64,000 nucleotides of DNA, taken from positions 78,802,001-78,866,000 of the forward strand of contig NC_042999.1 of the NCBI RefSeq assembly GCF_006345805.1, read 5' to 3'. A program made the position numbers and the translations under genes. Every line of letters begins with the position of its first letter. The stretch's first letter is position 1. Below, in pieces: positions 25,950 to 37,524 of the stretch. Source of the stretch: Octopus sinensis. Lineage: Eukaryota. The notes beneath the pieces are model-generated. The model did no database searches and was not told the origin of the DNA. It saw only the letters and a program-made list of their open reading frames with translations.

Positions 25950-26499
25950 GAGTGAGAGAGCAGTGCATGCCATCAAAGTGACACTGGGGTAAAATATATG
26001 AAGCCCAGTATACCCATCATGACTACACGTCTGATAAGGGTACACCAGGCACATGCATCACAACCATATGTGCGCGACATGGTGATAACAAGATAAACAG
26101 CGCATGACCTTGCGGGTGGGGCCCAGTTAAAATTTTCTTCTGGTCGAGTAGCCCATCCCGCTCAAAAGGTCCCTGATTAAGGGTTGTTTAAGGATGTTGA
26201 ATGAAACACCTATGTTTTCAGAGGTAAATTATTCAAACCCCAAAGAATCTCTCTCAGCACATGGCTATGATGCTCCCCCACTACTTCTGCTCATGATCAG
26301 AGATGCACATATCGCCAGCCCCTAAGGGACATAGTCAACTGGTTAAGGTCAAACAACTGAGAAGCAAATCTGTGGTATTGAGCAGAATATTTGCTACGCC
26401 CATCTTTTATACCAAGACAAATCAATGTACATTATAACACTTCTAGTCAGTTAAGATCAGAAGCCATGAGAGCCGCTGCCTGGTACTGCATGAGGGCAT
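25950..26499 (-). mobile_element. Element E copy 1: ~550-bp non-coding element in an (AAT)n array
   Basis: High similarity to 26568-27123 and 37067-37524; (ATT)n on both sides. Strand inferred from the truncation polarity of copy 3. Confidence 0.8.
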
Positions 26500-26567
26500 T
26501 TATTATTATTATTATTATTATTATTATTATTATTATTATTATTATTATTATTATTATTATTATTATT

Positions 26568-27123
26568 GAGTGAGAGAGCAGTGCATGCCATCAAAGTGAC
26601 ATTGGGGTAAAATATACGAAGCCCAATATACCCATCATGACTACCCGTCTGATAAAGGTACACCAGGCACATGCATCACAACCATATGTGCGCGACATGG
26701 TGATCTCATATCAAGATAAACAGCACATGACCTTGCAGGTGGGGCCCAGTTAGAATTTTCTTCAGGTTGAGTAGCCCATCCCGCTCAAAAGGTCCCTGAA
26801 TAAGGGTTGTTTAAGGATGTTGAAAGAACCACCCATGTTTCCAGAAGTGAATTATTCAAACCCCAAAGAATCCCTCTCAACACATGGCTATGATGCTCCC
26901 CCACTACTTCTGCTCGTGATCAGAGATGCACATATCGTCAGCCACTAAGGGACATGCTCAACTGGTTATGGTCAAACAACTGACAAGCAAATCTGTGGTA
27001 TTGAGCAGAATATTTGCTGTAGCCCATCTTTTATACCAAAACAAAACAATGTACATGATAACACTTCCAATCAGTTAAGATCAGGAGCCATGAGAGCCTC
27101 TGCCTGGTACTGCATCAGGGCAT
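26568..27123 (-). mobile_element. Element E copy 2
   Basis: Same two boundaries as copy 1; (ATT)n flanks. Confidence 0.8.
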
Positions 27124-27166
27124 CTTATTATTATTATTATTATTGTTATTATTATCATTATTAAAA

Positions 27167-27375
27167 ACGGCGAGCATGTAGAATCCTTAGCATGCCGGGC
27201 GAAATGCGTAGCGGCATTTCGTCTGGCTTTACGTTTTGAGTTTATATTTCGCCGAGGTCGACTTTACCATTTATCCTTTTGGCGTCGATAAATTAAGTAC
27301 CAATGAAACACTGGGATCCATGTAATCGACTAGTTCCCACCTCTAAAATTTCAGTCCTTGTACTTTAATAGAAAG
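27167..27375 (+). mobile_element. SINE family A monomer with (ATT)n tail
   Basis: cggcgagcatgtagaatccttagc..aatagaaaggattattatt. Confidence 0.85.
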
Positions 27376-27494
27376 GATTATTATTATTATTATTATTATT
27401 ATTATTATATTATTATTATTATTATTATTATTATTATTATTATTATTATTATTATTATTATTATTATTATCATTATTATTATTAAACCAATTTT

Positions 27495-27850
27495 TTTACT
27501 ATCCACAAGGGGCTAAACGCAGAGAGGACAAACAAGGATAGACAAACGGATTAAGTCGATTATATCGACCCCAGTGCGTAACTAGTACTTTATTTATCGA
27601 CCCAGAAAGGATGAAAGGCAAAGTCAACCTCGGCGGAATTTGAACTCAGAGCGCAACGGCAGACGAAATACGGCTACGCATTTCGCCCGGCGTGCTAACG
27701 TTTCTGCCAGCTCGCCGCCTTAAACCATCGTTAGCAGCATTTCGTCAATTCTTATGTTCTGAGTTCAAATTCTACCGAGGTCGACTTTGCCTTTCAACAT
27801 TAAGGGGTCGATGAAATAAACACCACCCCTCCTTGTGCTTGTAGTAGAAA
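27495..27850. mobile_element. SINE family A: first unit of a dimer (minus, 27495-27722) head-to-head with a decayed plus copy (27730-27850)
   Basis: cacaaggggctaaac..gccagctcgccgcct, followed by ..ttctgagttcaaattctaccgaggtcgactttgcc. Confidence 0.8.
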
Positions 27851-27920
27851 TAATAATAATAATAATAATAATAATAATAATAATAATAATTAATAATAAT
27901 AATAATAATAATAATAATAA

Positions 27921-34290: not shown

Positions 34291-35399
34291 TACACCAAAT
34301 CATTGAATGAACTTATCCCAAATCCTTGTAGCATTCATGCATCTTCTTTACTCATATTTAAGTAACAATACTCAATGCAATCTATTTGATCCTTATTTTT
34401 TACTTATGTACATATACTTACTTTATAATGAAAATTATTTTCATGTAAACTTTAAACCTACAACTCGTATTGTGTATCAAAGAGGTAATTGTCTTTGTTA
34501 GGGACAACAATAAACCCTTTTTCTTCCACCACACCAAATAAATACACACATATTCAAACAACCCTTCTCTGCCACACACAAACTAATAAAGCATGAATGA
34601 TATAAAATAAGAACAACACACAAGCGATATGAGGAGTCCTCAATGAACTTAAGGTCAAAAATTAAAGGCTCTCCAGTTGTTTTAATAGTTTGTGTGTGCG
34701 TGTTTGGATTGTCTCCTCTAATGGTTTCTTTCCTATGTATTGTTTGTTGTCTTCTAACAGCGGAAACTGAGATTTATCATACAATCCTCCATCCCGTTTA
34801 TTTCACTAAATTTGTTTACTGATATTTTCATACAAGTCAAAGGTGGTTATTCGTGGTATGTCGTTTAACCAAACTAATGATATATCTGACCAGCTATTTA
34901 TCAGTTCATACTCACTGAACAAAAACTAATACGCGTGTGTGTTTGTGTATGTATATGCGTGTACGTGTTGTGTGTGTGTTTAGTGTGTATGTTTGTGTAT
35001 GTATATATGTGTGTATATGTATGTGTGTGTGTTGAGTGTATGTGTGTTGTGCGTTGAGTGTGTTCGCGTTTGTGTGCGTATATGTGTATGTGTATACGTG
35101 TGCGTGTGTGTGCGCTCGCGCGCGCACACAGATACCGGTCATTTATTTATAATTGTATGAACGGCGGCAGCAGATTAAATTAATGAGACGTTTGAGCGGA
35201 AATGGTCTGGTGGTACGTTATCCGGAACGTGGAACAAATACCGCAGTCCGGAGGTTCGTGCCTGTGAACTGTTTTAGATTCCTGCTTAAAAACCATACCA
35301 TTTTACTTCACTTACGCCACACTTCCTATTCCTCATATCTCTCAAACATTTTAGAACACAAGCAATACAATATTTTATTCTAAGGGTTATGACTATTAT

Positions 35400-35560
35400 A
35401 AGACGGCGAGCTGCGAGCAAATGCTTAACGGCATTTCCTATGATTTTTATGCTTTGATTTTAAATGCTGTCAAAGTCGACTTTATCATTCGTCCTTTCGG
35501 GGTCATTGAAACGAGTAGCGGTTGAGCACTGGGGTCGATGTAATTGACTCTCCTCTTCCC
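35400..35560 (+). mobile_element. Decayed SINE family A monomer
   Basis: ggcgagctg..gtcgactttatcattcgtcctttcggggtc..cactggggtcgatgtaattgact. Confidence 0.7.
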
Positions 35561-36425
35561 TTCAATATTGCATGCCTTCTGCCGAAGATAAGTTTAATTT
35601 GATCCACTTTGGAAAAGAGGATACTCTGAAACTACCATATGCCCTTCCCCCGGGAGACTCACTAGTGTCGTCCAGCAACACAAGAGGCCTTGGAGTAATT
35701 GTTGATAACAATCTAAGCTGGGGTTCCCACGTAAACAGCAAAGATGACTTGGCTCGCAAGATTTGCTCCAGGATTCTGAGAACTTTCCGGTCTAGGGATG
35801 CCTACAACATCATCCCTCTCTACTCTACTTTTGCCCGACCCCATGTTGTATACTGATGTCCCCCCCCCATACGAAGCAACTCATTATGAAAGCAGAAGCA
35901 CTCCAGAGGTCAATAACAAGAAAGATAGACGGCATAAAAGGCTTTGATTATTGGGGTCGACTTAAAAACTCAATCTCTACTCTCTCCATCGTAGCCGGGA
36001 GCGCTACATCATTTATGTAATGTGGAAAATATTCCATCAATATTGCACAAATGATGTTGGCATCAATTTTAAAATCCATCCAAAACTTGGCCGCTGTGCT
36101 ATACGCCCACCGCAAGGATCGGACTCGGTACACATAGCAACATTACAACGTAACTACTTTATCTCAACCGGTCCAGCTCTCTTTAATATTACACCAAAAT
36201 ACATCAAAACAGAAACAGATCCCATAAAATTCTTAACTTCTCTGGACAAATTTCCCCAAAAAATGCCGGACCAACCTCCTACACCTGGATATGTCTCCAA
36301 CAAGAATAAATCTTTGCTAGGGTGGGCTATGGTGTCCCATATATGATTGAGGTGTGAATCGCGATTTAAAAGATTTTACCAGGTACTATTGAGTTAGATA
36401 TGGCCTATACTGGCCGAAGCCTATC
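35560..36425 (+). mobile_element. CR1-type LINE 3' fragment
   Basis: KFNLIHFG..RGLGVIVDNNLSW..RILRTFRSR..YSTFARPHVVY; ..TGPALFNITPKYIK..SLDKFPQKMPDQPPTPGY. Confidence 0.85.
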
Positions 36426-36877
36426 TCAGTTATCTAAGTTATATCAGAATTTAATTCACACGAGCTACACTCAAGTCTCAACCAGAGATATCAAAGGATA
36501 AGTTTTTTCATCTAAAAATGCTGACAGGTGAGGAGCCATGCAATTGAAATTTATGTGAAAAACATCTCTTTATATAATTTTATAACACAGGTTGCATTTA
36601 TTTTAGAGAGGAATTTACATAAGACATGCAACGCAAGTCTGATAATTTGGGGCTTCCTGGAATTTGGACTACGTATTAGTTTGCTCCTTTTGATATCACT
36701 CCAAGTGTCTCTGTGACAATAAGTCGTATTATTGTTTTGAATGTAGAAATATACTTTTGTTATTTAGGGTTGCAACAGCAATCAAATGACAAATCTTTCC
36801 AACATGGTTTTTCATACATTATTTACATTATTTACATTACTTACATTCCACGGATATTTGTCATCATCTTGTTTGTT

Positions 36878-36928
36878 GTTAATACATCGTTTCGGCTGAT
36901 TTTTCTTCCAGCCTTCTTCAGTTGTCTT
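36878..36928 (-). ncRNA. Hammerhead-like motif (canonical core + extra A, weak stem I)
   Basis: CUGAAGA-A-GGCUG-gaagaaaaau-CAGCC-GAAA-CGAU-GUA; stem I has only 2 bp next to the core. Confidence 0.5.
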
Positions 36929-37066
36929 GGGGAATTTTCGAACCTGGGTTCCCATTCCTGAGGTAGTTTTCGATGTTATTATTATTACTATTATTATTAT
37001 TATTATTATTATTATTATTATTATTATTATTATATTATTATTATTATTATTATTATTATTATTATT

Positions 37067-37524
37067 GAGTGAGAGAGCAGTGCATGTCATCAAAGTGACA
37101 CTGGTGTCAGATATACGAAGCCCAGTATACCCATCATGACTACCCGTCTGATAAGGGTACACTAAGCACATGCATCACAACCATATGTGCGCGACGTGGT
37201 GATCTCATATCAAGATAAACAGCACATGACCTTGCAGGTTGGGCCCAGTTAGAATTTTCTTCTGGTCGAGTAGCCCATCCCGCTCAAAAGGTCCCTGAGT
37301 AAGGGTTGTTTAAGGATGTTAAACGAAACACCCATGTTTTCAGAGGTGAATTATTCAAATCCCAAAGAATCCCTCTCAGCACACGGATATGATGCTCCCC
37401 TACTACATCTGCTCGTGATCAGAGATGCACATATCGTCAGCCACTAAGGGACATGCTCTACTGGTTAAGGTCAAACAATTGACAAGCAAATCTGTGGTAT
37501 TGAGCAGAATATTTGCTGTAGCCC
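37067..37524 (-). mobile_element. Element E copy 3, truncated at its putative 5' end
   Basis: Shares the ctctcactc-(AAT)n end with copies 1 and 2 but lacks ~95 bp at the other end. Confidence 0.8.

Follow-up and report, generated by a model that had tools for sequence, protein, structure and literature searches.

A probable TAA-repeat-specific, non-autonomous retroposon of octopuses and its candidate Dong-like partner

A 64,000-nucleotide stretch of the Octopus sinensis genome (assembly GCF_006345805.1, contig NC_042999.1, positions 78,802,001 to 78,866,000; here the window) raises the question of how a non-coding repeat of about 550 bp, element E, came to lie in arrays of the trinucleotide AAT, and which machinery moves it. 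The window is 36% G+C and rich in microsatellites and in tRNA-type short interspersed nuclear elements (SINEs). Because E has a fixed 3' end, a constant tail phase, copies truncated at the 5' end, and independent insertions, and has no open reading frame (ORF), terminal inverted repeat or known head, we regard it as very probably a discrete, non-autonomous retroposon of the type that lacks long terminal repeats, specific for TAA repeats.

E is a repeat of 550–556 bp, found three times in the window by BLAST and MAFFT at 92–94% pairwise identity and at the same positions as in an initial annotation of this DNA (E1, E2, and E3; Table 1); the same searches find no further E-related sequence in the window. 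Three additional loci were reached through gene models that had incorporated E, so that six copies are known in all, each at a locus of its own and together spanning at least two species. These are a full-length copy in O. bimaculoides (locus L001), a 5'-truncated copy in O. sinensis (locus L002), and a UniProt model (P0001) that translates the 5' end of another full-length E into poly-I, the antisense of (AAT)n. Five of the six copies are known as DNA, and the P0001 copy is known from its protein translation. Searched against proteins, eight peptides derived from E returned only four octopus gene models, all with exonised E (Octopus bimaculoides); a third protein search, aimed at more octopus loci, gave three proteins only, and neither the two E2 ORFs looked up nor P0001 gave a match. 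No exact match to E patterns occurs in the JGI metagenome, GTDB genome, or IMG/VR collections, and the supplementary O. vulgaris transcriptome FASTA contains no E motif in the portion examined. The O. vulgaris repeat library contains 893 “unclassified SINE” families and 58 “unknown” families, and the E family is probably present among these without a name (PMC13282606). Pairwise distances among E copies range from 2% to 13%, a spread which, judged by sequence divergence, shows that E has been active over a long period, recent times included.

Read on the window minus strand, E has the form 5'-ATGCCCTSATGCAG...CTCTCTCACTC-(AAT)n-3'. The minus-strand 3' ends of E1, E2, and E3 are alike (...GCATGCACTGCTCTCTCACTC) and lead into (AAT)16, (AAT)22, and (AAT)30, respectively; in all five copies known as DNA the 3' end is kept and the tail begins in the identical phase (CACTC followed by AAT; chance ~(1/3)^4). 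E1 and E2 have a common 5' end, ATGCCCTC/GATGCAG, which reads as ATGCCCT(C/G)ATGCAG straight after TAA repeats. The start base is identical in four of the six copies (E1, E2, L001, and P0001), with an upstream repeat that ends in ...TAA plus 0 or 1 nt: no base intervenes in E1 and P0001, a G does in E2, and a T in L001. The remaining two copies combine 5' truncation with an intact 3' end (E3 from position 99, L002 from position 64). This agrees with the initial annotation, which had described a ..ctctcactc-(AAT)n end shared by all three window copies and an opposite end common to two of them and truncated in the third.

Ends of this kind might also be produced if E were no more than a long 3' untranslated stretch belonging to an autonomous long interspersed nuclear element (LINE) outside the sample, with “ATGCCC” as a favoured truncation or microhomology point beside TAA repeats. 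The junctions of the truncated copies, which lie at A/T-rich spots (TATAAAA, TTATCATG), are compatible with microhomology to the repeat, and the sample is one of six copies. However, four of the six stop at the identical base and none reaches further, and neither a coding remnant nor a longer relative was found; we consider this origin very unlikely.

At least two TAA units are present within 10 nt upstream of all five E 5' junctions, as against 2.1% of positions in 170 kb of octopus DNA (~4e-9). The description of AAT arrays on both sides in the initial annotation holds for the association of every copy with TAA repeats, but not in full for the O. bimaculoides copy, which has an (AAT)11 tail at its 3' side and merely “aaataataat” (3 units) at its 5' side. 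The long array is invariably at the CACTC end of E, and the 5' side sometimes has just 3 units. No target-site duplication is recognisable at the E copies, because the flanks are the repeat itself.

The sense strand of E is assigned to the window minus strand because truncation occurs at the ATGCCC end, the long array lies at the CACTC end, the L001 copy has only 3 units on its 5' side, and the predicted fold is strand-asymmetric. The sense RNA folds at -182 kcal/mol, compared with -164 +/- 6.7 for shuffled sequences (z = -2.8), whereas the antisense strand gives z = +0.8.

E1 and E2 are arranged head-to-tail with a period of ~620 bp, and there is a local tandem duplication elsewhere in the window (13.4 kb and 14.5 kb). 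Both would be compatible with spread of E at the DNA level, as a satellite-like E + (AAT)n unit multiplied by unequal exchange or segmental duplication within arrays. However, E1 and E2 differ at 37 sites, and derived sites are common to E1 and E3 and to E2 and the O. sinensis copy, so that neither E1 nor E2 has the other as its nearest relative. Because they belong to different sublineages, they represent two independent insertions, one into the repeat beside the other, rather than a local duplication. E copies also occur at unrelated loci in two species, with unrelated flanks past the arrays, and are truncated at one end only; spread at the DNA level is therefore exceedingly improbable. A tandem such as E1/E2 should rather be the outcome expected of a repeat-targeting element whose tail recreates its target.

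E encodes no ORF longer than 50 aa, except by read-through into poly-N or poly-I, and has no terminal inverted repeat; with truncation at one end only, it does not conform to a miniature inverted-repeat transposable element or other DNA transposon. A search of both strands for an RNA polymerase III (Pol III) B box, allowing up to 2 mismatches, found none, and resemblances to the A box are no more than chance would give. Three Rfam scans identified no family in E at E-value <= 10 (tRNA, 5S, 7SL, snRNA, hepatitis delta virus (HDV), hammerhead, or other), one of these scans being limited to 271 bases around the E 5' end; the top match, to mir-1246 (E-value 0.6–2.5), is far short of threshold. No tRNA was detected in E by ARAGORN. 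The initial annotation was thus right that E has no ORF, no terminal inverted repeat, no convincing Pol III box, and no tRNA head, and for want of a Pol III head its label of SINE does not apply in the strict Pol III sense. Nor does E have the 3' region in common with a partner LINE by which SINEs are strictly defined: it has only the (TAA)n tail in common with the Dong sequences tested (see below).

It had also been suggested that the 5' end of E might be self-cleaving. Judged from sequence models, this appears unsupported: no HDV, hammerhead, or other ribozyme family was matched, and within 220 nt there is no conserved 6–7-bp partner with which the first 7 nt could form an HDV-type P1. The absence of a hammerhead match at E-value <= 10 likewise sets E apart from retrozymes and Penelope-like elements. 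A resemblance of E to pieces of U2 snRNA was rejected, as it has no backing from the U2 model. The extra G at the E2 5' junction hints, though weakly, at a capped RNA. A 10-mer, GATGGGCTAC (sense), is found twice per E, 248 nt apart, in all copies (E2 26771-26780 and 27019-27028); one of the two lies inside an internal motif that the initial annotation had singled out as similar to a Dong 3' untranslated region (UTR).

A candidate for the machinery that moves E is encoded nearby. The initial annotation had noted a TAA-targeting Dong/R4 LINE fragment ~800 bp from E; a Dong-like fragment of R2/R4 type, with a restriction-like endonuclease (RLE) expected of that type and flanked by (TAA)n, indeed starts at 27921, 798 bp from E2, and it fits Dong, a LINE of the R4 clade. 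A metagenome assembly (ENA ERZ22665968, contig k127_34301366; locus L003) contains a Dong copy 96% identical to the window fragment over 471 aligned bases, and octopus DNA (host or prey) is therefore present in that metagenome sample. The L003 copy adds 449 residues to the Dong ORF, with RVT_1 and a zinc-binding motif (zinc knuckle), and its best solved relatives are R2 retrotransposon proteins. All three Dong copies (window, L003, and L002) are in (TAA)n, and relatives of the fragment in other animals have poly-N from AAT arrays at their truncated 5' ends. The known target of Dong, in insects as well as in molluscs and cnidarians, is (TAA)n (PMC7998251, PMC3812793). In O. vulgaris, no LINE group has more recently active insertions than Dong-R4, with 1129 of them and at least five recently active families (PMC13282606).

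An exact 46-bp duplication is present at the 5' end of the Dong fragment (27930-28021), and the 5' end of the L002 E copy (10930-11060) has four to five stuttered partial repeats of ~20–30 bp, which involve its first ~30 bases. Tandem partial duplications at truncated 5' ends, here one case each, may be a common signature of how 5' junctions are formed.

E and Dong have in common their target, their polarity relative to the repeat strand, and their repeat tail. At L002 a Dong copy and E occupy one array on the same strand, and at all five 5' junctions the sense strand of E is on the TAA strand of a (TAA)n repeat, as dependence on Dong/R4 would entail. By common target, polarity, tail, and co-residence, Dong is the likeliest partner of E, and we favour, with some confidence, the reading that E is moved by Dong via target-primed reverse transcription (TPRT) primed on a (UAA)n tail.

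Several points weigh against this reading. The window Dong fragment is on the opposite strand from E1/E2 and in a separate array. The initial annotation had advised a search for a LINE with the E 3' end; a profile built from the 3' UTRs of three Dong copies of two lineages and run with nhmmer has no match in any E copy at E-value <= 100, and no similarity to any part of E was found elsewhere in ~190 kb of cephalopod DNA, LINEs included. Because E has no similarity to the Dong 3' UTR, the Dong C-terminal region, or another LINE, the classical proof of a LINE/SINE pair, a common 3' end, is missing, and the Dong side of the comparison comprises the 3' UTR and C-terminal coding region rather than a full-length Dong. 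The E sample amounts to six copies, with three of the loci detected through their E content, which bears on copy number and on the truncation profile. No promoter or processing signal was identified in E, and compensatory changes are seen at 0 of the 147 pairs of the predicted fold, because the E copies are too few and too similar. Furthermore, the Tx1 and HERO groups of LINEs, which both occur in octopus, have microsatellite-specific members in other animals (PMC4494074, PMC4640811).

The internal motif of E that was annotated as loosely like the Dong 3' UTR does not survive comparison: when E is aligned locally (Smith-Waterman) with the fragment or with its 3' UTR, the score does not exceed that of dinucleotide shuffles. 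Derivation of E from a decayed Dong coding region was rejected as well, since a profile of the C-terminal ORF (~100 relatives) scores 172 bits on a control and at most 0.4 bits in every E frame. In the absence of 3' UTR or C-terminal ORF similarity, E did not arise from these Dong lineages by internal deletion, and the proposed origin akin to that of short internally deleted elements (SIDEs) is unsupported for the two lineages sampled. What stands of the annotated partnership with an RLE-type LINE is a discrete, non-coding, non-autonomous, TAA-associated element with a Dong-like neighbour; the 3' UTR sequence link has fallen away, and the partner is inferred.

E might nevertheless be a true SIDE, internally deleted from a Dong/R4 (or HERO/Tx1) family outside the DNA examined and recognised via common 5' and 3' UTRs. 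Its organisation as a discrete unit with defined ends, its strand-specific predicted fold, and its Dong-like target and polarity would all be in keeping with such an origin, and the two lineages sampled compare with at least five recently active Dong-R4 families in O. vulgaris (PMC13282606). Yet the two Dong lineages, which are ~80% identical, have a conserved 3' UTR block that is absent from E, and E has neither a LINE-like coding remnant nor a partial match in the other sequences examined. We regard descent from such a family as unlikely, while giving it some weight.

A different LINE group, of Tx1 or HERO type, could also be responsible, or E could be read from the other strand and owe its movement to the LINE on which the (ATT)n-tailed SINEs depend. 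The microsatellite-specific families of other animals (PMC4494074, PMC4640811) lend this some plausibility, as do the (ATT)n-tailed SINEs that occupy the same arrays as E. However, sense transcription from the plus strand would need 3' truncation and a 3-unit tail in L001, and there is no fold signal on that strand; in addition, Tx1 and HERO were never seen in TAA arrays of the examined DNA, whereas Dong was seen three times. The chance that either applies is accordingly small.

For the favoured partnership with Dong, we infer an RNA intermediate, TPRT, Dong as the enzyme supplier, and tail-based recognition, by the following steps. An E RNA from the window minus strand would start with AUGCCCU and end in ...CUCUCUCACUC followed by a (UAA)n-type tail. 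A TAA-specific LINE endonuclease would nick the TAA.TTA repeat, and the exposed (TTA)n 3' end would pair with the (UAA)n tail and prime cDNA synthesis. This synthesis would often halt early, leaving 5'-truncated E copies, and the other strand would be joined directly after a TAA unit. The enzymes would be supplied by a Dong/R4-clade LINE of the same arrays and the same polarity. Recognition would be relaxed, relying mainly on the repeat tail, or would be exerted by a Dong family outside those sampled; tail-based recognition is proposed because E has no 3' UTR sequence in common with the sampled Dong lineages. Many of the targets would be (ATT)n tails of tRNA-type SINEs, which E would enter in antisense, giving a tail-to-tail arrangement.

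In its fullest form, this proposal would make E the first described non-autonomous Dong/R4 partner: microsatellite-targeted, recognised by its (UAA)n tail only, without a Pol III head, possibly transcribed as a capped Pol II RNA, and living mainly antisense to the (ATT)n tails of a second SINE/LINE system. We offer this full combination tentatively, as a possibility on which we would not insist; no description of a non-autonomous Dong/R4 partner was found in the literature searched.

E is comparable in part to several known systems. The R2 SIDEs of Drosophila are likewise short, non-coding, and non-autonomous, lack a Pol III head, have a defined 5' end, and are inserted at the target of a sequence-specific RLE-type LINE; but they retain the parent 3' UTR and a 5' HDV-like ribozyme, neither of which E has for the Dong lineages tested, and their target is rDNA rather than a microsatellite (PMC3414825). 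SINEU-3 of crocodilians resembles E in being non-autonomous, in having a partner (Tx1-Mar LINEs) deduced from a common narrow target, in forming tandem pairs by sequential insertion, and in its uncertain mode of transcription. It differs in its U2 snRNA-derived body, in the apurinic/apyrimidinic (APE)-type endonuclease of its partner, and in its DNA transposon target, whereas E matches no RNA family (PMC4494074). Dong elements (R4 clade) of Bombyx, Anopheles, and Biomphalaria show the same insertion into (TAA)n in fixed polarity, (TAA)n 3' tail, and 5' truncation as E (PMC3812793, PMC7998251); unlike E, which lacks an ORF and does not resemble the Dong ends examined, they are autonomous, with both reverse transcriptase and RLE. 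Sadhu of Arabidopsis and SVA of hominids are neither SINEs nor deleted LINEs. Like E, they are non-coding, several hundred bases long or more, and have no recognisable Pol III head; as proposed for E, they are LINE-dependent and recognised through a simple 3' tail. They use poly(A) and L1-type machinery without target specificity, in contrast to the (UAA)n tail of E and its confinement to TAA repeats (PMC4494074).

If the partnership with Dong is correct, a TAA-specific hitch-hiker without a common 3' UTR would suggest that an RLE-type LINE can accept templates by the repeat tail alone. This would bear on RNA choice by R2/R4-type enzymes, a matter of interest now that these enzymes serve as tools for gene insertion, and E would account for some of the repeats listed as “unclassified SINE/unknown” in octopus genomes. 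Target-specific LINEs are regarded as “polite” parasites, and to our knowledge few non-autonomous hitch-hikers on them have been recognised (R2 SIDEs and SINEU-3).

Table 1. Positions of E copies, associated repeat arrays, and other elements. Positions are those of the window unless a locus is named.
Feature	Position	Strand	Remarks
E1, full-length	25950..26499	minus	550 bp; 5-bp deletion relative to other copies; 4 derived sites common with E3
E2, full-length	26568..27123	minus	556 bp; nearest to family consensus; 98.2% identity to non-orthologous O. sinensis copy
E3, 5'-truncated	37067..37524	minus	Begins at consensus position 99 (first 98 bases gone); 3' end intact
E copy of L001, full-length	70546-71101 on O. 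bimaculoides chromosome CM046622.1 (GCA_001194135.2)		90% identity to consensus; first and last bases as in E1/E2
E copy of L002, O. sinensis	11032-11524		5'-truncated at position 64; 3' end intact
(AAT)16 tail of E1	25902..25949	minus	Also (ATT)16 tail of plus-strand SINE ending at 25901; tail-to-tail
(AAT)22 array	26500..26567	minus	E2 tail and simultaneously 5' flank (target) of E1
Imperfect (TAA)13 array	27125..27163	minus	E2 5' flank; one extra G before ATGCCC
(AAT)30 tail of E3	36976..37066	minus	
E3 5' flank	37525..37549	minus	(AAC)5(AAT)2-3 TAT; degenerate tail of upstream tRNA-like element, same strand
Dong-like (R2/R4-type, RLE) LINE fragment, 5'-truncated	27921..28440	plus	46-bp tandem duplication at 5' end; last 88 ORF codons; 169-nt 3' UTR; candidate partner class
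(TAA)88 tail/target array of Dong-like fragment	28441..28704	plus	
tRNA-type octopus SINE (SINE b) with (ATT)36 tail	27165..27484	plus	Inside same old array; example of array-supplying retroposons
(ATT)n-tailed SINEs	25800-25949, 27165-27484; L002 11761-12000, 19400-19576; L001 74686-74770, 84020-84094		
Decayed CR1/L2-like LINE fragment	10155-11290	minus	Reverse transcriptase, C-terminal region (all three fragments)
Decayed CR1/L2-like LINE fragment	35572-36444	plus	
Decayed CR1/L2-like LINE fragment	45689-46378	plus	

The arrays that hold E are shared with a second retroposon system. The tRNA-type SINEs that abound in octopus have an (ATT)n tail when read in sense, which is complementary to the tail of Dong and E. 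Copies of the two systems thus accumulate in common repeats, facing opposite ways. The L002 copy of E, for instance, is tail-to-tail with an antisense SINE. In this way, the tails of one retroposon system serve as landing pads for another. The polarity also switches beside the Dong fragment (28441-28760), where the plus-strand (TAA)88 runs straight into (ATT)17, the tail of a minus-strand element ending at ~28755, again tail-to-tail. A minus-strand SINE at 27485-27722 was considered as (AAT)n-tailed and rejected: in BLAST, other copies extend beyond this position, which shows that the array was inserted into the SINE.

Two short pieces that resemble tRNA and contain a B-box-like GAGTTCGATTCC lie on the minus strand, one directly upstream of E3 (window 37550-37660) and one at L002 19577-19700; they lead into (AAC)5(AAT)n or (TAA)n. 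Neither Rfam nor ARAGORN calls a tRNA in these two pieces, which might represent a separate TAA-tailed SINE.

Two of the CR1/L2-like copies have a common 3' end, stopping near 36444 and 46378 beside (TA)n. Assignment of the sequence up to 36975 to the 3' UTR of a CR1-like LINE was rejected, as the second copy puts the end of the LINE near 36444. The local tandem duplication of ~1.17 kb (13380-14100 and 14547-15270) is 97% identical over the compared stretch and contains an element ending in ...gatttaatgaaaaattaatgaagg(AAT)n.

E also affects gene annotation. At L001 70546-71160, an NCBI model (P0004; protein phosphatase 2A (PP2A) 55-kDa regulatory subunit, B55) reads the 3' half of E, together with its (AAT)n tail, as protein-coding (...CTLIRRVVMMGILGFVYF...TALSLNNNNNNNNNNNDNND), immediately before a genuine exon. 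The resulting E-derived poly-N coding stretch is most likely an annotation artefact, by which at least one octopus gene model counts E and its tail as a coding exon.

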